32,321 bases of DNA from Perkinsus chesapeaki ATCC PRA-425 (lineage: Eukaryota; Protista; Perkinsozoa). The translations under genes and the position numbers were made by a program. Location of the stretch: the NCBI GenBank assembly GCA_013115145.1, contig JAAPAO010000405.1:1-32321 (forward strand). The letters are read 5' to 3'. Shown here piece after piece: positions 3,962 through 32,321 of the stretch (its first letter is position 1; each line of letters begins with the position of its first letter). The notes under the pieces were generated by a model. The model was given only the letters and a program-made list of their open reading frames with translations. It was not told where the DNA came from and searched no databases.

Positions 3962-4315
3962 GGGTTATTCAATTAACCTATTTCGAATCTTTCACTACCC
4001 TGAGCAGAGCGCTGTTTTTAATCTTCAAAAAGCTTTAACAAGATATCTCTCGATAAGCGGATTGATCCAGCATCAGGTTAGGGGTTAGTCAATCAACCTA
4101 TTTCGAATCTTTCACTACCCTGAACAGAGCGTTGTTTTTAATCTTCAAAAAGCTTTAACATGTTATCTCTCGATAAGCGGATTGATCCAGCATCAGGTTA
4201 GGGGTTAGTCAATCAACCTATTTCGAATCTTTCACTACCCTGAACAGAGCGTTGTTTTTAATCTTCAAAAAGCTTTAACATGTTATCTCTCGATAAGCTG
4301 ATTGATCCAGCATCA
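3962..4315. repeat. 120-bp tandem triplication covering the upstream region, ATG and first 12 codons of the PITH gene
   Basis: 3961-4080, 4081-4200 and 4201-4315 are near-identical; the third copy continues into the PITH reading frame (ATG at 4280). Confidence 0.96.
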
Positions 4316-5542
4316 TTAGAGTGTCTTAATGAAGATCCAAAGCATCCTGTTAAGAATCTTCTTCAACCCAATTCCGCACTGTAAGATTCGTCATAGAGTA
4401 TCTTACATATTTACCAAATACAGAATATATAAATTTGTTGCGTAGATGACGAGATTATCTTAGTTGTTGTCACCAGCCGTCTGTTGAGCTGCATTTTTTA
4501 TACTGATGACATACAAATGCATAAAATATATCATTTACTTCACTAATATAGCCTTCTCCCGAATAGCTCGGCCCTCCGGTGCAGTCCGTTCTGGTATTTA
4601 CCATTGGCCCTGCCAAAGAAGTAACGATCATTGAAGACGTCTCCTGGAGTCTTGTTAAGAACTCTCGATAGATTCATTTCTAATGGATTCGACAGTCGTT
4701 TGATTTATCGTTGTGCCCTGGCCGGGCTAAATGCCGTGTTAGGTATCTACAGTCGGACCCTACAGTAGATCAACAACTACTAATACGAATGGAGTTCAGA
4801 CAAGCAGTAACGTTGAGGGAAATCAAAGTGGTTGTTTAGGGGAAGGGCAGCCGTTAATTTATTACCCCTATTAGATAAGCTGCCAGCCCGATGAGACCTG
4901 CCCCAACCTGATCAAGCTTTTTACTAATAGGCTATCTTTAGGATTCCATTAGGCGGAATCTGACGACCCTGTTCAGGTCATAGCGGGCTACTCGGGGGAG
5001 GGGACTTCTTGCAACTGTCAAGCGAAATTCAAGGTCATATTAAGTGAGCTGACTTCAGTCTTATATCATTTATACACTCTAAACCTTCCTTTATATCATT
5101 TATACACTCTAGCCCTTCCTTTATATCATTTATACACTCTAACCCTTCCTTTATATCATTTATACACTCTAAACCTTCCTTTATATCATTTATACACTCT
5201 AACCCTTCCTTTATATCATTTATACACTCTAAACCTTCCTTTATATCATTTGTTACAGTGAACCCCCTCCTAGTTGAACCGCTACTAGCATCGCTCCGCC
5301 GGCTCCTTATCAAGATTCCCAACTTCTTTCAGATGATTCAAATAGAGGACCCCTCGCAGGCCTCGGAGATGGTTCAACTCCGAATCACCAAATTCCAGAA
5401 TGTCAAGAGCCTCCAGATTTTTATAGAGGACAATTTTGGATCCGACATTACTCGTATAAACCGGATTGAGCTCTTCGGGACTTTGGGGGAAAACACCGAT
5501 ATGAGTAGTGCAAAAGCGGCAGCAGCAGCTTCCACAGTGTAA
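4280..5542 (+). CDS. PITH-domain protein (TXNL1 C-terminal/PITHD1-like), interrupted by an in-frame TAG at 4950-4952; possible pseudogene or null allele
   Basis: Exons 4280-4380, 4743-4827, 4875-4976, 5333-5542 are phase-consistent: MLSLDKLIDPASLECLNEDPKH..LYLQSDPTVDQQLLIRMEFRQAVTLREIK..CPNLIKLFTNRLSLGFH*AESDDPVQ..VQLRITKFQNVKSLQIFIEDNFG..RINRIELFG, matching the PITH pattern (ECLNE, DEQLLI, LRxxKFQNVxS). Confidence 0.8.
5061..5251. repeat. 30-bp minisatellite, about 6.4 copies, in PITH intron 3
   Basis: Unit TTATATCATTTATACACTCTA(A/G)(A/C)CCTTCCT starts at 5061, 5091, 5121, 5151, 5181, 5211 and partially at 5241. Confidence 0.97.
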
Positions 5543-5857: not shown

Positions 5858-7266
5858 ATGGGTGTATCTTCTAGGGAAGAGGAGCTGAATGTCCTGTTGT
5901 GTCTCACAGGCTCCGTAGCGACCATCAAATGGCTCAACTTAATCGCTGAGCTCACTGAACAAGGCAAAGTCAAAGGCATTGATGTAATGAGGGAGAGAAT
6001 CTCGAAGTCGGCACCCGACTGGGAACCATCACGCCAGCTGGCTGGAGGGCATTGTCGAGCTTTAGGTAAATGTTAAGGTGGTGGCATCGGAGAGAGCTGA
6101 ACACTTTGTGTATCTTGACGGGCAGTTAGCAGCATTGAAGGACGTAGAGGTTTATACGGACGCGCAGGAATGGGATGCATGGCGCGGTAATACGGACAGA
6201 GCGGTATTATTGGGATTATGCCGGAAAGGTTTGTACTGTACATAGTGTCGCTTCGGGCTTCCCTAACTGGACCTCCCGAAGTGCTTCAAGAAAGCGTCAC
6301 GGTGGCAGCGGCTGAGAATAGCGGAGGTTTTTATATGGAAATTTATCCTCGCTCCACACACATGGAAGCCAACATATGTATTAACTCAAGCGAAGAGGGT
6401 TTTCGGGTTTCGGGTTTTCATGGTGTCCAACTCGAATGCAAGTCTCGATCGGTATATATGTATACTTGTCAGCTCGGGGTGATCCGGTAACTCACATTGA
6501 TCTTCGTCGATGGGCTAATGTTGTCCTTATTGCTCCTCTATCGGCGAATACTCTGTCTAAGATTGCCAATGGTGCAGCGGATAACCTTCTCACCAGCGTT
6601 ATGAGGTGAGTGCTTGGAGGAGGCTGTGCGGTTGAGAGCGGGTTAGGTGCCTTGACTTGAGCTCGGAGGGTCGGCGGAAGTGTCCGGTGTATCTTTGTCC
6701 AGCTATGAATACGATGATGTGGGATAATACATTCACGCGGGAACATCTTGAAGTAGTTAAGGGTTAGGGTAAATGATGAGGAAGAGGGTATTTTAGGGTA
6801 GTAAATGATAAGGGAAAGGGTATTTTAGGGTAGTTAATGATAAGGGAAAGGGTATTTTAGGGTAGTTAATGATAAGGGAAAGGGTATTCACTGATGACAT
6901 GGTAGAATTTGCGTCATGTTTTAGGCGTCAGTATAGGCTTATCTCGAAAAAACCAACTTCACAAACGTTGGAGTGTGTGGAGGCGTACCGAATGGGTCCT
7001 CATTAAAAAGTCAGGTCTGCGTTAATAAGCTGGGCTTCCGTCTTATAATGCCGATTTGTAAAACACTAGTGTGTGGTGAGACTGGTCTAGGAGCCATGGC
7101 AGAGCCGAAGGACATTGCAGCAGCCGTGCTGGGAGGCTTCGAAGGGGACCGGCTGCCGAGGAATTGGGAGAAGACACCGGGATGCAAGCTGGGACCGTTG
7201 GGCATTTCGCTGGCAGTTAATGTGGCCCTTTTGGGCATTCTCGTGTACAAAATTAGGTTTCAGTAG
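5858..7266 (+). CDS. PPCDC: Phosphopantothenoylcysteine decarboxylase (HFCD/Hal3-family flavoprotein) with a C-terminal hydrophobic tail
   Basis: Exons 5858-5983, 6078-6186, 6473-6605, 6647-6752, 7015-7266 are phase-consistent. Motifs: VLLCLTGSVATIK, DPVTHIDLRRWA, IAPLSANTLSKIANG-ADNLLT, PAMNTMMW, LVCGETGLGAMAEP (catalytic His and clamp Cys present). Confidence 0.92.
6785..6888. repeat. 32-bp G-rich minisatellite (about 3.3 copies plus a degenerate upstream copy) in PPCDC intron 4
   Basis: Unit AGGGTATTTTAGGGTAGTTAATGATAAGGGAA starts at 6785, 6817, 6849 and partially at 6881; contains TTTAGGG. Confidence 0.93.
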
Positions 7267-13162: not shown

Positions 13163-13804
13163 CTTAGCTCCTCTTTCGCACCGGTGATCTCGTTGATGTT
13201 GTGAATGTGTGCTAAGTAGTGTTTGAATCAGTGCTCACTTTAGCACTCAAAAGGTGCACTATCTCGTTTCTATCATGTTTCTTCGTATTCTTCTGCGGTT
13301 CTTCTGGACAGTCACTAATGCCAAGTCATGTCTTTTAGAGTCGTCATATGTGTCTCGCACAGAAGAAACGGTTCGTGCCCTAGCTTATGACTGGGACTTC
13401 AGAAAATGACTTGATGTTGATGTATGTATGATGTCATGTAGAAGATGTACTCCAAATACAGGATTGAGTTCAAGTCTCGTCAATAAAATGGCTAAGTGGA
13501 ATGATGAGAGCCTCCCCCAGGACGCACCCTAATTATTAGGGCTTAATGTCTATGGACACAGCATTTTAATTGGTATACTGTGAAGCCACCGTTCCTCTCG
13601 AACTTTCAAGATAGCTTTTTGCGCAAATTCTGAGCAGTTCTTCACTTCTCCAAGTTTGCAGAGCCTTTGCAGAGCGTTTTAGGAACGGCCGAGCTTGCGT
13701 GACGCGGCGCGTTCGGTCAAGGCTTCGGTCGCATTCTACTTTGACGTCAGTCGATGATTTGGCTGCTGCAGATCCGCGTACGAAATTTTCATGGATTCTT
13801 GTAA

Positions 13805-16999: not shown

Positions 17000-18972
17000 A
17001 TGGTAAATAAGCGCGAGGCCGAACGTAAGAAACTCGCCAAACAAAAGGCGATGGAGAAACGACGGGGATACAAGTCTAAGAGCGACGAGGAGGTGAGATA
17101 ACTAAAGTAAATGGAAATATAATCCGACCATTAGACCGTCGATACCAAAGCTGAACTGGAGAAGCAGATCCAGGACACTAGTGCCTTGGAGAAGCCGGCT
17201 ATTCTCCAGCACGCCACCATTACTGGTCATCGTACTTCTCAGTATCTTGCCAAGGACATTAAGATCGAACAGTTTAGTATGATTATAGAGGGTAAGGAGT
17301 ACATCAAGGATACTACCTTGGAGCTTAATATGGGTCGACGTTACGGTATGATTGGTCTTAATGGAAGCGGCAAGAGTACAATTTTACAGGCCTTGGCCGC
17401 ACGAATGGTAAGCTGGAATATTACAAAGTGAAACGGTTAGATATTTTATAGGTTGACATTCCAGACTATGTGGATATCTGGCTCCTACACGAAGAGTATC
17501 CTCCTTCGGAAGAGACCGCTATTGAGGCCGTCATCAGCTATGTTGCAACTGAGCAAAAGCGACTTGAGGCCCTCATGATGGACATCATGGAGAACCACCC
17601 GGAGAACATGGACTTGGTCGAACAAATCGGATTCCGTCTTGATGAGCTCGATCCATCTACCTTTGAGATTCGGGCTCGTGAGCTCCTCACTGGTCTTGGA
17701 TTCAAGGAGGATATGATGCAGAAGAAAACGAAGGACATGAGCGGTGGGTGGCGAATGCGTGTTGCTCTCGCCCAGGCATTGTTCGTCAAGCCGACTTTGC
17801 TGTTGCTTGATGAGCCTACGAACCATCTCGATCTTGAAGCGTGCATTTGGCTCGAGAACTACCTCTCCAGCTACGACAAGATTCTTGTTGTGGTATCGCA
17901 CTCGCAAGATTTCTTGAACGGTGTGTGTACTAACATCTGGCATCTTACCTGCCAGGGAACCTTCGAGTACTACAGCGGTAATTATGATACCTTCGTGCGC
18001 ACGCGTGCAGAGAACGAGGCCAATCAGATGATGAAGTGGAAGAAGGAGCAAGATGACATAAAGCATTTGAAGCAGTTTATCGCCACCAGTGGTGGTATGG
18101 AGAAGGCGGTTAGGCAGGCTCAGTCCAAGCAGAAGATCATCGATAAGATGGTTGAAGCTGGTCTAACTGAGAGGCCTGTTCCCGATCCGGTGTACGCCTT
18201 CAAGTTCCCCGAGTGTGATAGGCTTCCTCCTCCGGTGTGCTCCTTCAATGACGTGACTTTTGCTTATAGTGGCAAGGTGAAGGACATCCTGTACCAACAT
18301 GTGAGCTTTGGTGTCGATCTCGACTCGAGGGTCGCTCTTGTCGGCCCCAACGGTGCTGGCAAGTCCACCCTTTTGAAGCTGATGGAGGGCAAGTTGGAGC
18401 CCAATCTCGGTACAATCTCCAGGCATCCTCATTTAAGATGGGGAAGGTTCAACCAGCACTCCACTGATCAGCTGGATCTCACCAAGACTCCTCTAGAATT
18501 TATGCGGAATAAGTTCGCCGATGGTATCGCTACCGTTGACGGCACGAAGGTCCTCGGAGTTGAAGAATGGCGTGCTAAGTTGGGCCAGTTCGGTATTACT
18601 GGTCACTGGCAGACTCAACCTATGGAGACCATGAGTCATGGTTATCAGGCCAGAGTTGCCTTCTGCCTGGTGGCTCTCGCGAACCCTCATGTGCTCCTAC
18701 TTGATGAGCCTACCAATCATTTGGACATGTCCTGTATCGATTCTCTCGCCAAGGCTATCAATAACTTCAACGGTGGTCTGGTACTGGTTAGTCATGACTT
18801 CCGACTTATCTCTCAAGTGGCCAAGGAGATCTGGGTGGTCGATCATGGTGTCAAGCGGTGGGATGGTAGTATCGAGGATTATAAGAAGTCGCTTACGAAG
18901 CAAGTTTTGCGGTCATCTCGTAAGACGAAGAAGGCTGCCCCTCAAGTCAAGACTGTTGTAGCGAAGCAGTAG
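17000..18972 (+). CDS. ABCF2: ABC-F family soluble ATPase (ABCF2/Arb1-like)
   Basis: Exons 17000-17092, 17135-17407, 17452-18972. Two NBDs: GLNGSGKST, MSGGWRMR, LLLDEPTNHLD; linker RQAQSKQK; GPNGAGKST, LLLDEPTNHLD, VSHDFRLI. No TM domains. Confidence 0.95.
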
Positions 18973-21661: not shown

Positions 21662-24600
21662 ATGACACCATCTCTCCTACTGCTCCTCGCGGTGCTCTCC
21701 CCAGCGGCGATCTGGGCGTATCGTACCATCCACAGAGGTGCCATGTCGAATGCATTTATTCAAGTCTTAACTCCGTTTGGTAGGGACGCTTTGTGAATGC
21801 AACCATTTTAATAACTATTGGTTTAGCGTTGTCACCGCAATACAAAGGTAAGTCCAAGTTCCCGCGAGAAAGAGAGAAGTATCAGGTACGCTGAATTGGA
21901 GCGATCAGGTGGCCTCATGGACCCAATGATGCTGGCAGCCGTCGAGAACGATCTTCCCATCACATGCGAGGTAACCTCAGTGTCGTTAGATAGCATAGAA
22001 GGCTCTGCCTCAGCCAGGGGGGCCGACGACTCTTTATGACATGGAGATGGTGCCGATGAACGTGTCGACCCCAGTGGAGGTATCCAACCTATTACTGGTC
22101 TGTAATTGTCAAGTGGCCGTGGAATCATGCTGAGCAGGAGATCCTCGAGGCTGGCCGCACCGAATTCTGGCCTCTCGTATGGTTGAGCAAGTTCTGCGTG
22201 CCAGGACAGGTCCTACGCCTTTCTGCCGAGCCTGGTACCGGCGAACTATCAGGCAGCCTTAATGGCGTTGTGTTCGTGGAAGAGAGCCCTTCAAGGTGAC
22301 ATCGAAGGGGTTGCCAGCTACATGGTCGTGGGGGCAGAGCTGATGGAATACGGGTGAGTGTAGCGGGAGTCGCTGAAATATATTGGAAATCTCAGGCTCT
22401 CCTGTATGACCGATCACAACGGGGAGGACCTGCCGCTCAACGCCACTGTAGCATTTCTGCCGTTAATGGTGGAGCTTATTCCTGGTCAGGTCTTATCGGC
22501 ACTTCTTCGCGGCGAGCTGCCACTATCGTTACAAGATATAGTCATAGATCCCAGCAGGGACGAGAAGTACGCCAATACAGCTTATCGGTGAGAACGGAGG
22601 AGTCTCGAACGTGCAGCAAGTTCAGAGCGTGCATCCCTCTGCAAGTGAATCACCAGTGTTGGCCCTCGATCGCCTGGACGACCCATGACAGCTGTGAGAT
22701 GTACACTCCTGAGTGTGCCCACTTCCCTTACTATTAATAGAACATGTGTTCGATGAAGGTGCTGTGATCCCGATATCGAAGAGAAGGCTTCGGCTTGTGG
22801 TAAAAGCATGAGGAAGTGCTGCAACCTTCCGGAGGAGGCGGAGATCCACCAGCCGACTTGTGAGTGATCGGATGCGAGGCCGAAATCGGGAATCTGTGGG
22901 GTGCAGCGCCGATCCGTCTGCTGCACGATTCGCCACCGCCTTGGGATGAGTTCCAGCGGCTGCGCTCGAGTCTTCGGGATTGGAGGCGTGTTGGTTGTAT
23001 GTGGCCTCGGCTGGTGGAGATGTACTTGTCAAATGAAAGGGAGGATGAGAAGAAGAAAAAAGATGATGATGTGTGGACTAAAGCAAGAAATATAGGAATT
23101 CTATCGAGTGCGGTAAACTGCTAAAGTCGATATAATGTTTTGGATACCTCAGACAAAGAAGAAGCATTCGATGAAACATTCAAGAATTGGTGGGCATCGA
23201 GTTTTGGTGTGAAGGGGGAAATGACGGCATTTAGGTGGCAAAACTCCGAGGACCATCAGAGACTGTTCCCTCATGAAGACGTCTGGGCGATTAAGGGACC
23301 AGTCTGCTTCAACTTAGGTGGGTCGGTGCATTTGTTATAAGCTATCACGGTGCATTAGCGTGGTCGAGTTGATGAGCCTTTGTTCGTTTAGATACCGCCG
23401 AGTGGAGCACAGAGCTCGACATCGCTGATGGCATTGAAGTGGCTGAAGCCCTTCACGGTAATGTTGTCGATGAACACTCAGCCATGCTGCGTTCGTTGTT
23501 AGGCGTTTGTGGGGAAGGGATGCCCTTGAGGGAAGTGACAAGCTGTACATTGGATGGGGCATTGTTACCCGATAGAGAGGGGGTAAACTACACGCCTACG
23601 GAGAAGACACCGATGGATAGCTACTCACTGACACTGATGAGGGTAAACAAGGCTCCAAATCTACACCATCCGGGATACACGGTGCGTAGACACGACAGTC
23701 GCCACCACCATCAAACCAGACTATTCGTCGTCGTGGCCTGGCAGTTCTGATGGGGCAACTGAGCTGTGGGTCACTTGGCCAGTTGCTGATACCTACACTG
23801 GAGCTTTCAGCGAACATCTGGCACTTCTCTCAAGACTACACCTGGCTGTGGAAGCTTATTCAGCTCGGCGTTCTCAATGACAGTATTACGAATGCCTACA
23901 CGAAGGTTTGGCTCGTGGAGACAAAGTACGCATGAACACGCAGGGCGACGGTAGAACCAGTACTATTTTCATAGGTACGTCGGTCAGGCTGTTCCGGCAT
24001 GCTGCCCACTCGTTAGGTACGCTGCGGCGGAATGTGAAGTGGATGGCAAGAGATGTTGGCACTCTGATGGCGGGATACCCGGTCCGAAGGACCTATGGCA
24101 AATGATGGTTCACAAACTTGTACTTGTCGAGGAAGTGTTGGTCGATACTGCCCTATCCCCATAGGTGTTGTCATCAAACTTGGTGGCAAAAAGTGTCGAA
24201 TCCATTCACAGTTTCACCGACGGCAAAAGGCTGCTACGTGACGGTATAAAACATGTATGTTACGATGGCGCTGTGAGTGACGAGGCTTCGCCATGGTTCG
24301 GAGTAGTCTTCAGATTCAACCTTGGCGAGCATGGCCATCCGGTAAGCAGTATTACGACACCCTTCGTGAGACTGTTGTGGCCGCCTGTGGACTGCATGAT
24401 ACCGGCCTCACACGTACGGAAGCGTGAATACCATCGCCATTGCCAAGTCGGTTTAGGCAAAGTTGTTCTTCTCGAGCGGGGCTCACGTCATAGACGGTGG
24501 TCTGCCGAAACAGCAACCGAGATGACAGAGATGATCACCGACTGGGGTCGATTAAATGCTTTTACTGTGGGATGGGTACGCCCCGGTGGCCTTGACCCGT

Positions 24601-25434
24601 GCAACCAAGTAAAAGCTGCTCAGTTGTGCGAATCGCTCCTAGTTGCATTAGGTAGGGACCCTAGCGAACGCGGCTGTTATAATAGGCATCGGTGGAGCTG
24701 ACATGGCCAACCTGCTCTGGGCCCCTCGTGGTGCTATACTTATTGAAGTGAGTTCAATGGCGAACCGACTGGCGAATACCCGATAGTGTTAGGTTGATGC
24801 CGGCTGCTACCTTACCACCTCTGCATTATCAAGCAATGGCTCCGCGTATCGTTCTCATGTTTGTCGTAACGGCCAAAGCGGAGTGAGCCTATCGAGCAGG
24901 TGAAGCTCTTCAACGTGCCACCAGGTGCGGAAGCAACACTGTCATCCTTCCGCCCAGCCATTCCCATGGCGCGGCCCTGGTCTCGATTACAAAGGTGAAC
25001 ATTACAATAGAGCCAAGAGGATTTACGATGAAGCTGTTGCCGATGAACGATGCATAGACCCCGCCGAAGTGAGTGAACAGCCACTGCCGTGATGGGAGCA
25101 TTGTATCGGAGAGCCCGATAGAGACTTTAGAGATAAAATTCAAGATGAATTTTAGACACCCCCGCCCCAGAGCACCTTCTCGGCGGATGGTTACCGCGCA
25201 GAGTTCGCAAGGGTGAAGGGTCTTGCATACAGCGCAATACATAGGTAAGATATCAGTCCGCATTGGGCAGAGTTTTGGCTTAGGTGTGATTGCCACGAGC
25301 CGAGAGGGCATGATTACGACTGTTATCATAGTTGGCTTCAAGGTGAAATATCCATTGATGTGAAGGGCACTCTCATGCCTTTGTTGAACACATTGGTGCA
25401 CGACTATTTGCTGTATGCGTTCGATCTAGAATGA
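21662..25434 (+). CDS. Large multi-exon secretory-pathway glycosyltransferase, GT61 (DUF563/EOGT/POMGNT2-like) domain at the C-terminus
   Basis: Signal-like MTPSLLLLLAVLSPAAIWA at 21662; a phase-consistent path of about 20 exons can be built. GT61-type segments: SANIWHFSQDY, HVCYDGA, YYDTLRETVVAACGL, KVVLLERGSRHRRW, DPCNQVGTLANAAVIIGIGGADMANLLWAPRGAILIEV, FARVKGLAY, ISIDVKGTL; stop TGA 25432-25434. Some joins (22.6-23.8 kb) are less certain, so two genes are possible. Confidence 0.75.
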
Positions 25435-25733
25435 TGCTTCCTATGCGCTTCATGTTTTCGTTGAGGAGTTCGGGTTATACTCCATCACCACAATTTACAG
25501 CCTTCTACAAAAGCTGCTTAGCAAGGATGTAGTTAAGGCATCCTTTCTGCGAAAAGCATGCATGAAAGTAAGAATCTGTACAACTGACGGAACCCACTCC
25601 CACTGCACTCGGTTGACATTCAAACGCTATCGGTAAAGCAAGGAAAGAAAACGATGTTGGGAGTCTGTGCACATAAGCAGGTCGGCCAGCTACAATAGTC
25701 ATTGGCTATTTGTCAGAGCTCGGTGGTCAATGA

Positions 25734-28593
25734 TCACTAAATTAGTGACACCAATCATAAAGCGAATAGTAATGTTATCGCACGGGCTCAAACTCACGGA
25801 AAGAAAACCCGTCTACAAAGGCAAGGTGTTTGGGTACTATTTGACCGAGTGCTAGAAGCAAGTCTCCGACGTGACATATTTTCAACGTCTCCATGTGACC
25901 TTTTTGCAACACCATAGAAAAATTTCAACCCGAACACACAGTATTTGGAATCCATGCCTGTGGGATGATGTATAGTGCTAATAGGCTATCTCCGAGGCTC
26001 GGAGATAGCCTACTAGCACTATAGCTCGGAGTCTGAGCTTCAGAAGGATCAGTTCGTCAGGTAAAGCAGAGTTCGGTGGTCTCTGGATGGTCTCGCAGTC
26101 CGCTAATACAGAGGTGAAGGCCACGCTGATACTTTAGCGTTACGGGACAACTGTAGCGGGTCGACTAGATCATGAATTAAATGCGGGAACTCTCCGTCAT
26201 TGACTTGTGTAGGAAAAAGGCTAATCAGAGGGAGGTGGGGTAATACCACTGGGATTCATCTAACCTGTCCATCTTAGTTGAAAAGATGAACGACGGTCGT
26301 ATCTCAACCCGAACAAAGTAAAAGTGTGCTCTCTAGTAGCATAACGATACAGGCACGCAAAGTACTGTAAAAGCAAAGAATAATCGGGGAACTTGTTCAA
26401 TAATGGATATAGTCTCATTGAGGCTCAATGATTGTGCACAATCTGCTCAGGTGATTACGTATAAAGAGACACTACTTAATACAGCTAACATGGATCAAAA
26501 AGCTATCATCGTATGAGAGGAAGGCTCAACAAAAGTCCTTGTGCGCTCTCAGAACCACATCCCGGTTGAGAAAGCTTGAAGCGAGTATATTCACGCTCCG
26601 ATTGTACACGTAGTGATACAGGCTTCCATCGGCGTGAACGCCAAGGCGCCTGTTGGCCCTGTGAATGAAGTCAATGCACTCAGCATGGCTAGTGGGGTCT
26701 ATAACTAATGGGTAAAGTACAAGGTGACTGCTTGGAAATCAACATCACGTAAGATGCTGATTAGAATAGTGGGAGATTCAGCGAGCTCCGACATAGGTGT
26801 AGCTGATAGCACACACGACATGGACGGGCCGAAGAAAATACAGAGATACATACCACTTGGGCGCTAACCCTGCGAGGTTAGACTGTCCCTGTCACTATCT
26901 TCGACGAGCGCCCGATGGAGGGGAGGGTCCAACAGTCACGATAACTTATCTGGATCGGCCAGCCCTGACGCAAAGAAGCTCTAGCACTTGAGTGTGACTG
27001 TCATAAGTTGACACGCCTAGAACAGCCTCGATAGCATTGTCTGGCCTACACACCTTGCGTGCAGGAACGTGTCACAAGTTGTGAACGGTTCGTTGTGATT
27101 CACAACGTGTGTTCTGGGGAGCCTGTTGGATTAAACCTTCGCCATTCCCTCTATTGTGCGAGCCCAATCTGCGTAGAAAAACGGTGTTTGCGTAGACGTA
27201 GATTGGTGTGGAACTCAAGTGCAGTTAGTGCTCATGCTAACATTATAGCACAAATACGACCCTGGGCCGTTACGACCCGGTCGTAGTATTGGTATTCTGG
27301 CTCAACCTCCTTTGTTGTGTTATTCTTCAGAGTTCATCAACTGATACCGCGACACGTGCCTACATCTAGTGGCGCACAAAGCAGCCCTACATAGCGTAGT
27401 TGCATGTGTGACCGTAGGATACGTACACATGTGGGGGTTGATCAGCTTGTGGTAGGAGGTTCCTATATTCCGTCTGCTTGTACCAGTTCGTAGATGTGCG
27501 CCTGCTATATTGTATGTAAATCGATTCTGGTCGGCCACATGTAGCTACGAGTCTTTCCATTCCCCCCTGCTGTTGTTTTCTGTCACAGCCTGTGGCTCAC
27601 AGGCGTAGCGATTTTTGTAGAAACTAAGCGCGCACTCGTACAGTGTGGGTCGCTAAGAGACTCTCTTTAAGAGAGGATTCGGCGGAATCCTTTATTCGAG
27701 CTGTCGGTGGGAAGCTAGCTTCACATACGTTCCATTACTTGTCTCCGAGGTGACCTCGGACCCGAGGAGGCTCGGAGAGTGTGGTAAAATGTGGACTGCT
27801 TCCTTGGGTGGGCCCTTATTTGAAGCTTCCTCAGCCTAGCGATGAGACCAATATTCCTCAAGTGCTAGCTAACGCTTCTGATCCTTAGAGAAATTTCAAG
27901 GCCGATTCAAACCACCGGACCGGTGGCACCGGTATCGTGACGAGACTGACGTCCTTAGATTCTGAATATCTATTGTATATGTGAATCACATAATGTGACG
28001 TCTGAATCTCCTTTGGGTTCCCTAGCTTTGACTCAAAGCCTTTGATTTTCCTGGCGAGACGCAGCAAGCATGATAACCCTAAAGTCCCTCAGACTGAGGG
28101 CCTTAGCGGCCTGTGAATTTAAGAAACCCAAGATAAGCGTGTCGGAAAGAAGAGAGTTTGAGAGACTAGCAGTGGTAGTGCGGATTGGACCGTCACCTGG
28201 AAAAATAAATGGAGCTGATCTCGTCGACGTGATGCCGTTGACCCCCCCGGTGATGTCACGCACGCATGCTAAACGGTCAACAAATTTGCATAAAGCCTTT
28301 GGGATTGTGTTACCAGAGCCGGCCATCGTCTATCAATAGTATCAATCGGCTTATTGATCACGCCCCCGTCCACAAGCTTGCCCCGCACGTGTGCACATGG
28401 CACGGGGCTTGACGCTTGGGCAACCGCTACTGGAAACTTGCTGATGAGTTACTCATCAAAGATAACTTATGTCATGAGCCGTGCTGGCGTCACGCGCCGA
28501 GGCGCCAGCGCGGCGCACCACTCCAAGTTGAAGATTTCAACAGCTTCTTGAAGCCACCGGTGAAGGTTCTCTGTGGCTCAGCCACTGGCTGAG
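25734..28593. other. Island enriched in short perfect inverted repeats with a single central base
   Basis: 13 sites with arms of 7 bp or more: 25734-25748, 25982-26012, 26415-26431, 27091-27107, 27271-27285, 27661-27675, 27744-27760, 27912-27926, 27978-27992, 28025-28039, 28086-28100, 28442-28458, 28577-28593. No intact gene recognised. Confidence 0.85.
25971..26023. repeat. 53-bp near-perfect palindrome (26-bp arms, one mismatch, one central base)
   Basis: TATAGTGCTAATAGGCTATCTCCGAG-G-CTCGGAGATAGCCTACTAGCACTATA; only 25981/26013 is unpaired. Confidence 0.97.
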
Positions 28594-28845
28594 ATACACT
28601 TCTAGCTCCCCACAGGGGCGATACTCCGGCAGTTCTTCTCAGGGCAACCAGTATCTTTTCACTTAATGTACATCTATGGCGCTTACCATTGGGAACTGTC
28701 TGCTAGTGATACCTCTGACTCAATTGTCTACCTCGCAATATAATGCCAAACTACTTCTGCCTGACATACCTCGTTGTAGTTGCTGGACATACTACTTTCG
28801 AAGATGTTTTTGCAGGGTTGAAGATACTGAGCGGTACGGAGCGCA

Positions 28846-30404
28846 ATGCTGAGACTAGCGCTTGTAGGTTGGTCTGTAGGTGTGACGTATACAATTGAGG
28901 AAGAGAAGCAACATCTCGAGAGGTTCACATTCGATGTGAAGCAAGTGGAGCCTCTCGGGAAATTGTCTTCTGATGAGCTAGAGGAGCTGTTCGATCGGAG
29001 TATGCCGGCCCTCATGCAGAGCATAGCAGATGAGATTAACTCGCAGCAGAGCAGTTGGGTGGCTTCCGTAGATCAACCACATTTCCGCGGTAGTTTGGAT
29101 GCCCGTCTGCTTTTCTATCACCAGATTGAATTGCTAAATGGACCGGCTGACCGTCATCGTGTTTCAGGTCTATCTTGCGGAGATGTCATGGATCTTCACG
29201 GCGGGTTCATGGAAGCGAAGCCCTACAGCGCGGCGTTACCGGTGGCAAACCGCACATTGGCTCCAGTTGGTGACCTTCCACTTGATTTCGATGGTCGAAA
29301 AGAATTCAAAGAATGTACCAGCCTGATTGGCAGTGTTCCGTAAGTGATTCGTTACTAGTCGGAAACTGCGAGCCATGCCATTTCAACTCTTCAGAGATCA
29401 ATCCAATTGTGGTAGCTGTGCAGCAGTTTCCGTAGCTGCCGCATTCAGTGACCGTTTATGTATAAAAACCAAAGGAAAAGTGAAGAGGTTGTTATCCTCG
29501 GGTTACCTTATCGCTTGCTGCGACCCTGATACCGGATGCACTAGGTGAGCGCTCAAGGGTTAGATTTGCTCAGAATCTTCGCGCAGGGGCTCTGGCTGCC
29601 TAGGAGGGCAAACCTCCGAAATGTGGACATTTGTGCAAGAGTATGGATTCCCTACTGGTACGTTTAGGCCCTTCATGCTCCTATAGCCGGGAACCTAGCT
29701 CAAGTGCATGAATTCAGTGTCTCAGGTGGAGGCTATACACCTAAAGAGTCGATGAGTGAAGCCAGCGGCTGCTGGCCATACAATTTCCCGAAGTGCAATC
29801 ATAATGTTGGACTGGAGCCGCACCGCCTTATGGATTATCCGCCGTGTCCCAAAGTAGGTTGCGAGCATGATGCTTTCGTCTACTTTATTCTTCAGACTCC
29901 TGCCGAGCCGCCAGCTTGCTCGTCTACTTGCCCAAATGATAAGTACAAAAATGAGCTGGACGAGTAGGTTCATACCAGATTTTAGGGATGATGACTCTTC
30001 ATAATGGTTATTAGTGATCTACACTTTATTGATGATAAAGGGGCAGTTCGCATCCCTGATGTTGAGACAATGAAGCTCGAGCTAAGCCAATTCGGATCGG
30101 TGAGTGGTACAGTAAACCTCTCTGGCAGTCTTAGCATGAGGTTTGCCAGGTAACAGCTAATATGGAAGTATACGAGGACTTCCGATACTACAAGTCGGGT
30201 GTCTACACCCCCACACAGGGTAAACCCATCGGACCCCATTCAGTGAAGTTGATTGGTTGGGGAAAGAGAGGCAAGGATGAATATTGGCTTGCAGTGAACT
30301 CTTGGAATGAAGGATGGGGCGAATCTGGGCTATTTAGGATAGCCACGGGTAAGTGTAAAATAGAAGAAGATGTTGTTTATGGTGATCCTGAAGTTGATAC
30401 ATGA
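28846..30404 (+). CDS. Cathepsin B-like cysteine protease (papain family C1A)
   Basis: Signal peptide MLRLALVGWSVGVTYT; propeptide SIADEINSQQSSWVAS; DLPLDFDGR; DQSNCGSCAA (catalytic Cys 29417-29419); GCLGG; CWPYNFPKCNHN; YEDFRYYKSGVY; GPHSVKLIGWG (His); YWLAVNSWNEGWG (Asn). Several GT-AG introns; stop at 30404. Confidence 0.95.
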
Positions 30405-30785: not shown

Positions 30786-32321
30786 TCATGTGGCTATAGC
30801 ATTGATGTCATCCGGGGATAAACCATCTAAAAGGGAATGGAGATCACCATCAAGTTCTGCTGTAACATCCTCCTGCTTCTCTCGGTCATTCGCGGAGGAG
30901 GCGGATGACGCTGACGACGCTCCATCTCCTTCAGAGGAAGATGCCTAAGCATCAGTGAACGTGGTACAACCACGAGGTTCGATGGCGGCTACCTCATCGG
31001 CCGAGGCTCGACAGTTCTCAGTTTCCTCAAGGATCTGCGCCACTTGCGCATTCACCACCTCTTGAGCTCCGACAACTGCCAAAGGGGCGCCTCGTGCGAG
31101 AGAGGCGGCTACTCCCACTTATGCTCTTTGCCGATTCGCGAAGATACTCATCGAAATCGTCGGAGCCTTGGGTCCTTTGATGACCGGTAGCACGGTACAG
31201 TATCCTGTGAACGGTATCGGTGTCACTGGCTGCTATGGCTTTGACGGTCTCCATTCCAGCCGAGTGCAGCGCGGCTGCCCAAGAGACTGACCTGAAGCAA
31301 TGCCGAATGGAAGAGAGTGAAGCACAATCGTGAAAACGCGAAGCGAGGATCATTCCGTTAGCGTCCTACAGCCCGACGTGACTGAGCTTGGAGGTCATCT
31401 CGGCGATGTACGCAGGTGCCCCGGTTGAGAGCTGCTCGCTGAGTGGGGTAAGAGCTGCCGCTAGTGCCCACCATCGGAGACGCTCACAGAATCCCACGAC
31501 CATGCCTGAGGACGGCTACTGTGGGGATCGCTGGAGGAATCGTACCACAGTACGCGGCGGAGGCCGACTGAAGCTGCTGTATTTGGCCACAGTTTACTTG
31601 GTAGTTTGCAGCCAGATTAGGAAGAGGCATCTGACGATTGATCTCAAGGCTGAGGAGGACGACTTACCCCCTTTAATAGGTGATGGAGGACTAATGTAGC
31701 GTAGAAGCGGACGTGAGTAGCCAACTGCCGACGCCACTTCATCACATCCTACACAGTAAGATTACACTATAAGCCCTCTCCCTTACCTCTGGGCTCTTTT
31801 GTTTGCACGCCGGCACTGGCGTGGATAAAGACAATGTGGTACTTCTTAAGAAAGGGGCGTTGAGGAACCCTTCATCGATCCCACATCTGACATGGACATC
31901 AGTCGCTGAGGTAAGGACCAGGACTGACCGAGTGGCGATCTTCCTTTGGTCAACCGTCATGCTGTTGTAGAGCCTCAAGAATGGCTCAATGCGGACGGGG
32001 ATGCCATGCCGGACTGGAGTGACAAGATACAGCAGGTGGAGGTCGCTGAGTGAGTCGAATCATTGTATCGCATCGGTGAGAGCTCACGCACCTCGATAAA
32101 AGGATTTGGCAGCTCGCATTCTTAAGATCGCGGAAGACAATCGAAGCCTCTTCGGCTTCTAAGGAGGAGAACGCCACGGCCTGAGGCAGCAGGAAGTGGA
32201 TGAGAGACGCCCTGGGGAAGGATGGGTCACACTTCGCCTAGGGGCGTCGACCGCAGCTGACCGTCTTCATCGTTAACCTAGAAACTCAAGATGGGGGCCA
32301 AGGGAAGACCGGTTCCTACTT
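30786..32321 (-). CDS. HELQ/POLQ-type Ski2-like DNA helicase, C-terminal part; gene starts beyond window end
   Basis: Spliced segments LRSTPLGE|AVAFSSLEAEEASIVFRDLKNA..S|DLHLLYLVTP..HVRFYATLVLHHLL..GQIQQLQSASAAYC|GMVVGFCERLRWWAL..AAALHSAGMETVKAIA match the HELQ/Pol theta helicase ratchet and HhH regions; stop TGA at 30788-30786. Confidence 0.85.

Follow-up and report, generated by a model that had tools for sequence, protein, structure and literature searches.

Genomic context

The window analyzed here, 32,321 nt in length, is the entire contig JAAPAO010000405.1 of the shellfish parasite Perkinsus chesapeaki (GCA_013115145.1). The features of interest lie in a 3.3-kb intergenic region (positions 25435 to 28742) between two annotated genes, namely an ABC-transporter gene model that ends to its left and a cathepsin-B-like gene (FOL47_007069, 28743 to 30404, plus strand) that starts to its right. 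An initial annotation described this stretch as a gene-free island, and while it indeed contains no gene and we retain the name, it is otherwise an ordinary intergenic region that also holds dispersed repeats. One of these has a core at 27279 to 27355 (plus strand) that is present at ∼570 times the single-copy depth (43,645 at position 27308, compared with 76), with 17 diverse loose ends at 27355, and depth also points to weaker repeats at ∼27486 to 27556 and ∼28286 to 28340. The dispersed repeats are constituents of the intergenic DNA and are separate from the palindromes described below. A tRNA scan of the island found none, and a comparison of the island with Rfam gave nothing at the gathering score and only chance-level matches at E ≤ 5.

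A single 4,086-nt Logan contig spans positions 24300 to 27336 with zero differences in DNA data from each of two studies, dated 2020 and 2022, and one of the runs may be the source of the assembly itself. Depth is ∼76 to 90 across 24300 to 28324 and ∼150 to 200 rightward, where two contig variants align. A haplotype difference adjoins the palindromic feature at 28573 to 28593, with the second contig replacing 72 nt (28594 to 28665) by 27 nt that consist of two further 12-nt CCACTGGCTGAG units and CCC. A single haplotype of the island is seen in the Logan contigs, the other being absent or too divergent to align, and the assembly seems to contain one island haplotype only. Two RNA runs yielded no contigs matching the stretch. 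The search for an orthologous or allelic locus with the ABC-F protein returned no Perkinsus protein, and an exact look-up of the L14 open reading frame gave no match. Four cathepsin homologues (P0121, P0136, P0137, and P0138), considered as possible markers of an orthologous locus, proved to be paralogues on other contigs without synteny.

Census of odd-length palindromes

An exhaustive inverted-repeat scan identified 14 perfect odd palindromes between 25734 and 28593, with arms of 7 to 15 nt around a single central base. The initial annotation had counted 13 of them, and while its quoted examples, their coordinates, and the vast excess all hold, the count from the scan is one higher and two of the palindromes (27912 to 27926 and 27919 to 27933) overlap. 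The whole window contains 30 perfect inverted repeats at an arm length of at least 7 and a spacer of 0 to 6. With the same minimum arm, the island (25700 to 28650) has 1, 14, 0, 1, 1, 0, 0, 0, and 0 palindromes at spacers of 0 through 8, respectively, and the remaining 29.4 kb of the window has 1, 3, 3, 4, 0, 1, 1, 0, and 1. When the island was shuffled 300 times with its dinucleotides preserved, the spacer-1 class had a mean of 0.21 and a maximum of 2, so that the preference for a one-base spacer proposed from inspection is borne out by an excess of ∼65-fold that is confined to the one-base center. Relaxing the arm to at least 6 gave 19 island palindromes at spacer 1, compared with 0 to 2 at any other spacer. 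The odd-length palindromes are thus real and far above chance.

Spacer-1 palindromes are found at three places outside the island (7796, which is an AT run, 13527, and 18628), where the initial annotation had noticed only one. Even palindromes are represented in the island by a single case against the 14 odd ones; this is the 14-bp palindrome at 26430 to 26443, which had been reported previously and is also present in our scan. Several of the odd palindromes occur as overlapping pairs with centers 7 nt apart (27661/27668, 27919/27926, 27985/27992, and 28032/28039), and this spacing means that the sequence reads as a word, the inverted word, and the word again.

An 8-base rule

For an 8-base word T, these pairs can be written as T[1-7], the reverse complement of T, rc(T), and T[2-8], giving 22 bases in total and a gain of 14 over the word itself. 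We call sequences of this form scars, in keeping with the interpretation that we favor below. Eleven of about 13 events in the island obey the 8-base rule at ≤2 mismatches, and 2 of those 11 are variant forms in which both of the folded-back copies are retained. The previously noted impression that the arms are unrelated and have a common geometry instead of belonging to a single repeat family is correct.

A scan of the window for the 22-nt grammar at ≤2 mismatches returned 10 matches, nine of them inside the island, where a binomial estimate of the chance expectation is ∼0.1. Proceeding from left to right, the island scars are located at 25734 to 25755 (T = TCACTAAT, 1 mismatch), 26416 to 26437 (CATTGAGC, 1 mismatch, overlapped by the 14-bp even palindrome, which itself falls outside the rule), 27264 to 27285 (GGGTCGTA, 1 mismatch), 27582 to 27603 (GTCACAGG, with both mismatches arising from one substitution in the middle word), 27654 to 27675 (AAAGAGAG, 1 mismatch), 27912 to 27933 (CCACCGGT, the only perfect 22-mer among the 10 matches), 27978 to 27999 (TATGTGAT, 1 mismatch), 28025 to 28046 (GCTTTGAG, 1 mismatch), and 28086 to 28107 (CCCTCAGT, 2 mismatches). 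Most island scars therefore bear 1 or 2 substitutions that break their symmetry. The sole candidate outside the island is at 13527 to 13548, with 2 mismatches. In every 22-mer, the bases at the two palindrome centers complement T8 and T1.

We also generalized the grammar to other word lengths. At ≤1 mismatch, a word length of 8 gives 7 matches in the window compared with a simulated mean of 0.0, a length of 7 gives 2, and lengths of 9 to 12 give zero; at a length of 5 there are 23 matches compared with 13 in simulation, which is no clear excess.

Two further events, referred to here as twin scars, retain more sequence, and in both of them the left and right halves yield an identical T. The first (25971 to 26038, T = CTCCGAGC) consists of a 53-nt palindrome at 25971 to 26023 (center 25997, arms of 26 nt, 1 mismatch) followed directly by rc(T) and T[2-8] at 26024 to 26038 (1 mismatch, with T as set by the left arm and center). 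The second (27071 to 27106, T = ATCACAAC) appears to keep both unfolded hairpins, with a left half of T[1-7] and rc(T) at 27071 to 27085 (2 mismatches), a filler of 6 nt, and a perfect right half of rc(T) and T[2-8] at 27092 to 27106.

The remaining palindromic features depart from the rule to different degrees. At 27742 to 27779 there is a compound palindrome, with perfect arms of 8 (27744 to 27760) enclosed by outer arms of 8 nt, which probably represents nested events. A single palindrome with arms of 8 is present at 28442 to 28458, and a partner copy of its T was not found. The feature at 28573 to 28593 is a shorter variant in which a 7-base version of the grammar is perfect at 28573 to 28591. 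The palindromes centered at 25997 and 27752 have TCTCCGAG-G-CTCGGAGA in common. We considered whether these two were related copies and rejected the idea, given that their flanks are unrelated and the common information amounts to only ∼9 nt; the sharing is treated here as coincidence or target preference.

Scars as insertions into a single word

The rule implies that a scar stands where a single word stood before, and three lines of evidence locate scars in place of a single word at an unoccupied site. One comes from the scar at 27264 to 27285, which overlaps the abundant dispersed repeat: where the window has the 22-mer, other copies of the ∼570-fold repeat read GGGTCGTA once. This empty site concerns one island scar and is drawn from loose ends at 27279 and 27231 and a contig consensus with an agreement of 0.67.

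Another comes from a second P. chesapeaki locus (L002), in which a retroelement pol gene with reverse transcriptase, RNase H, and integrase zinc domains is interrupted by three perfect scars. The long open frames of this gene run 2, 1, 3, and 2 and switch exactly at the scars by +2 each, as predicted by an insertion of 14 nt. The third is that when the annotated protein is aligned to the locus there is a gap of ∼20 to 80 nt at each of the three scars, and we read these gaps as predicted, spurious small introns. The frame comparison is based on open frames and annotated exons. A Pfam search of the pieces between scars did not recognize the integrase core, and a search for further copies of the L002 retroelement recovered its own annotated protein only. 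No site was seen that is occupied in one copy and scarred in another.

Distribution in Perkinsus

Four other P. chesapeaki loci, obtained for reasons unrelated to scars, contain 4, 4, 4, and 1 perfect scars. A 22.5-kb locus of Perkinsus marinus ATCC 50983 has 49 spacer-1 palindromes with arms of at least 7, compared with 1 to 3 at each other spacer, and 13 perfect 22-mers at a word length of 8, with zero perfect matches at any other word length. Scar density is greater in P. marinus. The five other Perkinsus loci examined, which represent two species, all have scars in their non-coding DNA. Most scars of the other P. chesapeaki loci are perfect, compared with only one in the island. The island is a dense patch of a genus-wide phenomenon and no unique element, and it is a rather old patch, because only one of its scars is perfect.

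Across 35 inferred target words, C at position 3 and G at position 6 occur in 46%, and T at position 2 and A at position 7 in 36%. The classic hAT target pattern nTnnnnAn is only marginally represented, its T in second or A in seventh place being seen in 25 of 70 cases (p ∼ 0.06), and the preference for C and G is the stronger one. The weak palindromic preference in the target words would fit a dimeric enzyme.

A transposon excision model

We consider it likely, and hold the view with good confidence, that the palindromes mark repaired excisions of cut-and-paste transposons that were hAT-type or at any rate belonged to a hairpin-forming superfamily making 8-bp target duplications. hAT elements hairpin the DNA that flanks them (PMC5873905; PMC1978519), and their target duplication is 8 bp, compared with 9 bp for Mutator (PMC4423477). 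The excess at a word length of 8 in the window, together with the 13 perfect matches at this length in P. marinus, points to derivation from an 8-bp target-site duplication, and the exclusivity of the one-base spacer, together with the identity of the centers in the 22-mers, agrees with a single-base center complementary to the base adjacent to the element. The parts of the hAT reading that we infer are the enzyme family, the opening of the hairpins, and the joining pathway.

Under this reading, transposons would have entered and left the intergenic DNA repeatedly. Each insertion would duplicate an 8-bp word T, leaving one copy on each side of the element. At excision, the transposase would nick 1 nt into each flank and seal each flank as a hairpin, with the left hairpin running through T[1-7] and the complement of T8 and then back along the other strand, and the right hairpin forming its mirror image. 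The one unpaired central base per palindrome would follow from this 1-nt offset. For the Hermes element, Zhou et al. in 2004 reportedly placed the first nick one nucleotide into the flank. If the host then opened both hairpins at a distance of 8 nt or more from their tips, two 3′ tails would result, with rc(T) at the left end and T at the right; being complementary over 8 nt, they could anneal, and ligation would yield the 22-nt product T[1-7] + rc(T) + T[2-8], with a gain of 14. A rarer route, in which the unfolded ends were joined without annealing, would produce twin palindromes with filler or a long arm of up to 26 nt.

No transposon or transposase was found in the window, and a scan for 8-bp duplications with terminal inverted repeats gave nothing credible in the window or in loci L001, L002, L005, and L006. 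In P. marinus, positions 17137 to 18485 of locus L004 contain a 1,349-bp non-coding sequence that is a candidate hAT-like non-autonomous element, which has a flanking 8-bp duplication without mismatch, a terminal inverted repeat of 11 bp that is likewise perfect and begins with CAGGG (termini like CAGGGTGTGAT), and repeated subterminal AAATTTCC-like motifs. The candidate is single copy, and we estimate the chance expectation of the scan at ∼0.01 to 0.04. Its CAGGG start resembles the termini of maize Ac. We infer a link between this candidate and the scars and regard it as a lead.

Alternative explanations

Hairpin excision might instead be the work of a Mutator-like or other hairpin-forming superfamily with an 8-bp duplication, as the MULE transposase Muta1 also forms flank hairpins and makes 8- or 9-bp duplications (PMC5499845). 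We judge this improbable. A Mutator-like footprint would derive from a 9-bp (8- to 11-bp) duplication, and the grammar has zero matches at word lengths of 9, 10, and 11 in either the window or P. marinus, which leaves a MULE limited to 8-bp duplications as a small possibility; in addition, >90% of Muta1 excisions are precise in a yeast assay, the one resident element that we found with a duplication of 8 bp has Ac-like CAGGG termini, and a single-base center is a documented hAT signature (PMC5873905). The initial annotation had grouped hAT- and RAG-type hairpin opening together as one option, of which the hAT side is supported by the 8-bp word and the single central base and the RAG side is not. 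V(D)J P nucleotides, made by RAG, and Transib are similar to the Perkinsus case in that a flank hairpin is opened off-center to leave a palindromic addition. However, closure of the RAG hairpin takes place precisely at the border, so that its palindromes are even and lack a central base, and a 5-bp target duplication is made, whereas the Perkinsus scars have one central base and an 8-bp word. Coding-end palindromes of the RAG/Transib type were therefore rejected, given the ratio of 14 odd palindromes to 1 even and the lack of a clear excess at a word length of 5.

Other explanations do without a transposon altogether. An error of repair or replication, in which fold-back (snap-back) priming or a double template switch created inverted triplications at random breaks, has some basis in that templated inverted insertions are possible products of fold-back and polymerase-theta-type repair and that a POLQ-helicase-like gene adjoins in the window, but it offers no reason for exactly 8 nt and one central base irrespective of sequence, and it leaves both the two direct copies of T around the filler and the palindromic target preference unexplained. 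We regard it as very unlikely, and the earlier suggestion that template switching perfected palindromes in single-stranded DNA likewise does not account for the fixed 8-base geometry. That the palindromes are clustered upstream of a gene and would be capable of cruciform extrusion could suggest a functional array of hairpins or cruciforms serving as an origin, a chromatin element, or a source of small RNA, which had also been put forward. This is extremely hard to reconcile with the data: the arms are unrelated, the substitutions in most island scars indicate that symmetry is not maintained, scars disrupt a retroelement open reading frame and recur in the non-coding DNA of all five other loci from the two species, and the region has neither an Rfam match nor contigs from the two RNA runs. 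Finally, palindromes are known from some library preparations, and the possibility of a fold-back artefact of sequencing or assembly had been raised at the outset. We give it next to no credence, and an assembly artefact is ruled out for the palindromes, because the contigs of two studies are identical over 24300 to 27336 and the Sanger-era P. marinus assembly has a like signature; many of the scars are, moreover, decayed.

Comparison with known systems

The closest likeness to the excision scars that we propose is found in Ac/Ds footprints from plants, budding yeast, and Candida albicans, which are also palindromic insertions centered on the complement of the element-adjacent base, with arms to 20 nt in yeast (PMC5873905), and which also keep both 8-bp copies minus one base each and are usually joined at microhomology (PMC5873905; PMC1978519). 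The earlier statement that no described element has this signature thus needs to be divided, since footprints centered on a single base are textbook for Ac/Ds (PMC5873905), while the stereotyped, full-length, and dense form was not found in the literature. Ac/Ds footprints are heterogeneous, as shown by 128 events in Candida that fell into 28 types, and most of their arms are 1 to 3 nt long, whereas Perkinsus has one dominant outcome in which the whole 8-nt word would be unfolded on both sides and annealed, with arms of up to 26 nt. The Ac/Ds footprints are also known from a reporter assay, whereas the Perkinsus scars are fixed genomic fossils at a density of 1 to 5 per kb.

Two other bodies of work are relevant here. 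A catalogue of excision footprints in rice (PMC4423477) similarly deduces past excisions from genome sequence, but these footprints are recognizable only by comparison of two genomes and are mostly deletions and foreign filler, whereas a Perkinsus scar can be identified from its own 22 letters. Fold-back and polymerase-theta insertions resemble the scars in being short inverted copies of neighboring sequence at a repaired break, but they vary in length and spacing and have no target duplication, in contrast to the fixed 7 + 8 + 7 geometry in Perkinsus. In the open-access text that we searched, we found no description of such scars in Perkinsus, and no genome in which a stereotyped footprint of the full duplication is described as a general feature. 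The hAT footprint is therefore a known kind, and what appears to be new is its uniform, long-armed, dense, and self-identifying form.

A broader proposition, which we consider evenly balanced, is that Perkinsus mends hAT hairpin ends by one near-fixed route, in which both hairpins are opened 8 nt or more from the tip and the unfolded target duplication is annealed, such that each excision leaves a datable 22-letter mark and thousands of these exist across the genus. If this is true, the genus holds a complete and countable ledger of transposition, present in two species, breaking open reading frames, and masked by annotators as tiny introns. Past excisions could then be counted and dated from one genome without a second for comparison, which is impossible in plants or animals because their footprints are short and varied. 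Such a uniform outcome would also suggest that the enzymes which open hairpins and join ends are an unusual set, and it would amount to a testable statement on DNA repair in an alveolate parasite, namely that hairpins are opened far from the tip and joined through 8 nt of homology. On a practical level, each scar adds 14 bases and so causes a frameshift in any coding sequence that is struck.

Scars in gene models and neighboring sequences

Another P. chesapeaki contig holds the locus (L002:38-3154) of FOL47_010859, an annotated protein that is a retroelement pol. Aligned to this locus, the protein skips three 22-nt scars, the motif that we read as a hAT-type excision footprint, with gaps of ∼20 to 80 nt. 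On the strength of this protein-to-locus alignment we read the gaps at the scars as spurious small introns, and P. chesapeaki gene models are probably distorted at every scar-hit coding sequence.

The gene adjoining the cathepsin-B-like gene (window 30786-32277, minus strand) is annotated with a POLQ_helical domain (polymerase-theta-type helicase), and the genome therefore encodes the machinery for microhomology end joining at least in part. This is the machinery required by the scar model, in which opened flank hairpins would anneal by their tails before ligation. Two palindromes that are unrelated to each other, at L002:3744-3796 and window 25971-26023, each consist of two arms, exactly 26 nt long, that flank a single central base, and this common arm length may point to a second distance at which hairpins are preferentially opened.

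Within the island lies the core of a dispersed repeat (window 27279-27355; depth, ∼570×), whose opening stretch, CGTAG ... TCTGGCTCAA, is similar to the Perkinsus spliced leader (SL) when compared with PmaSL2 (PMC3101222); GTTGTGTTATT, which comes next, is reminiscent of the “SL-like” sequences listed in the same source. Judged by these resemblances, the repeat may represent an SL-RNA-like pseudogene family. Haplotypes differ immediately to the right of the island: one contig carries an 11-nt tandem duplication (CTTATGTCATG) at window 28465, and another has two extra CCACTGGCTGAG units plus CCC in place of 72 nt at 28593-28666, adjoining the scar at 28573-28593.

Scars were absent from all four tandem-repeat arrays in the left part of the window contig, with periods of 33 nt (1774-1900), 120 nt (3962-4321), 30 nt (5031-5300), and 32 nt (6769-6888). 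In P. marinus, a candidate nonautonomous hAT-like element (L004:17137-18485, on GG681295.1), with an 8-bp duplication (CTGGGGGG) and a terminal inverted repeat (CAGGGTGTGAT), contains perfect scars at 17385 and 17722 and one with 2 mismatches at 17405.
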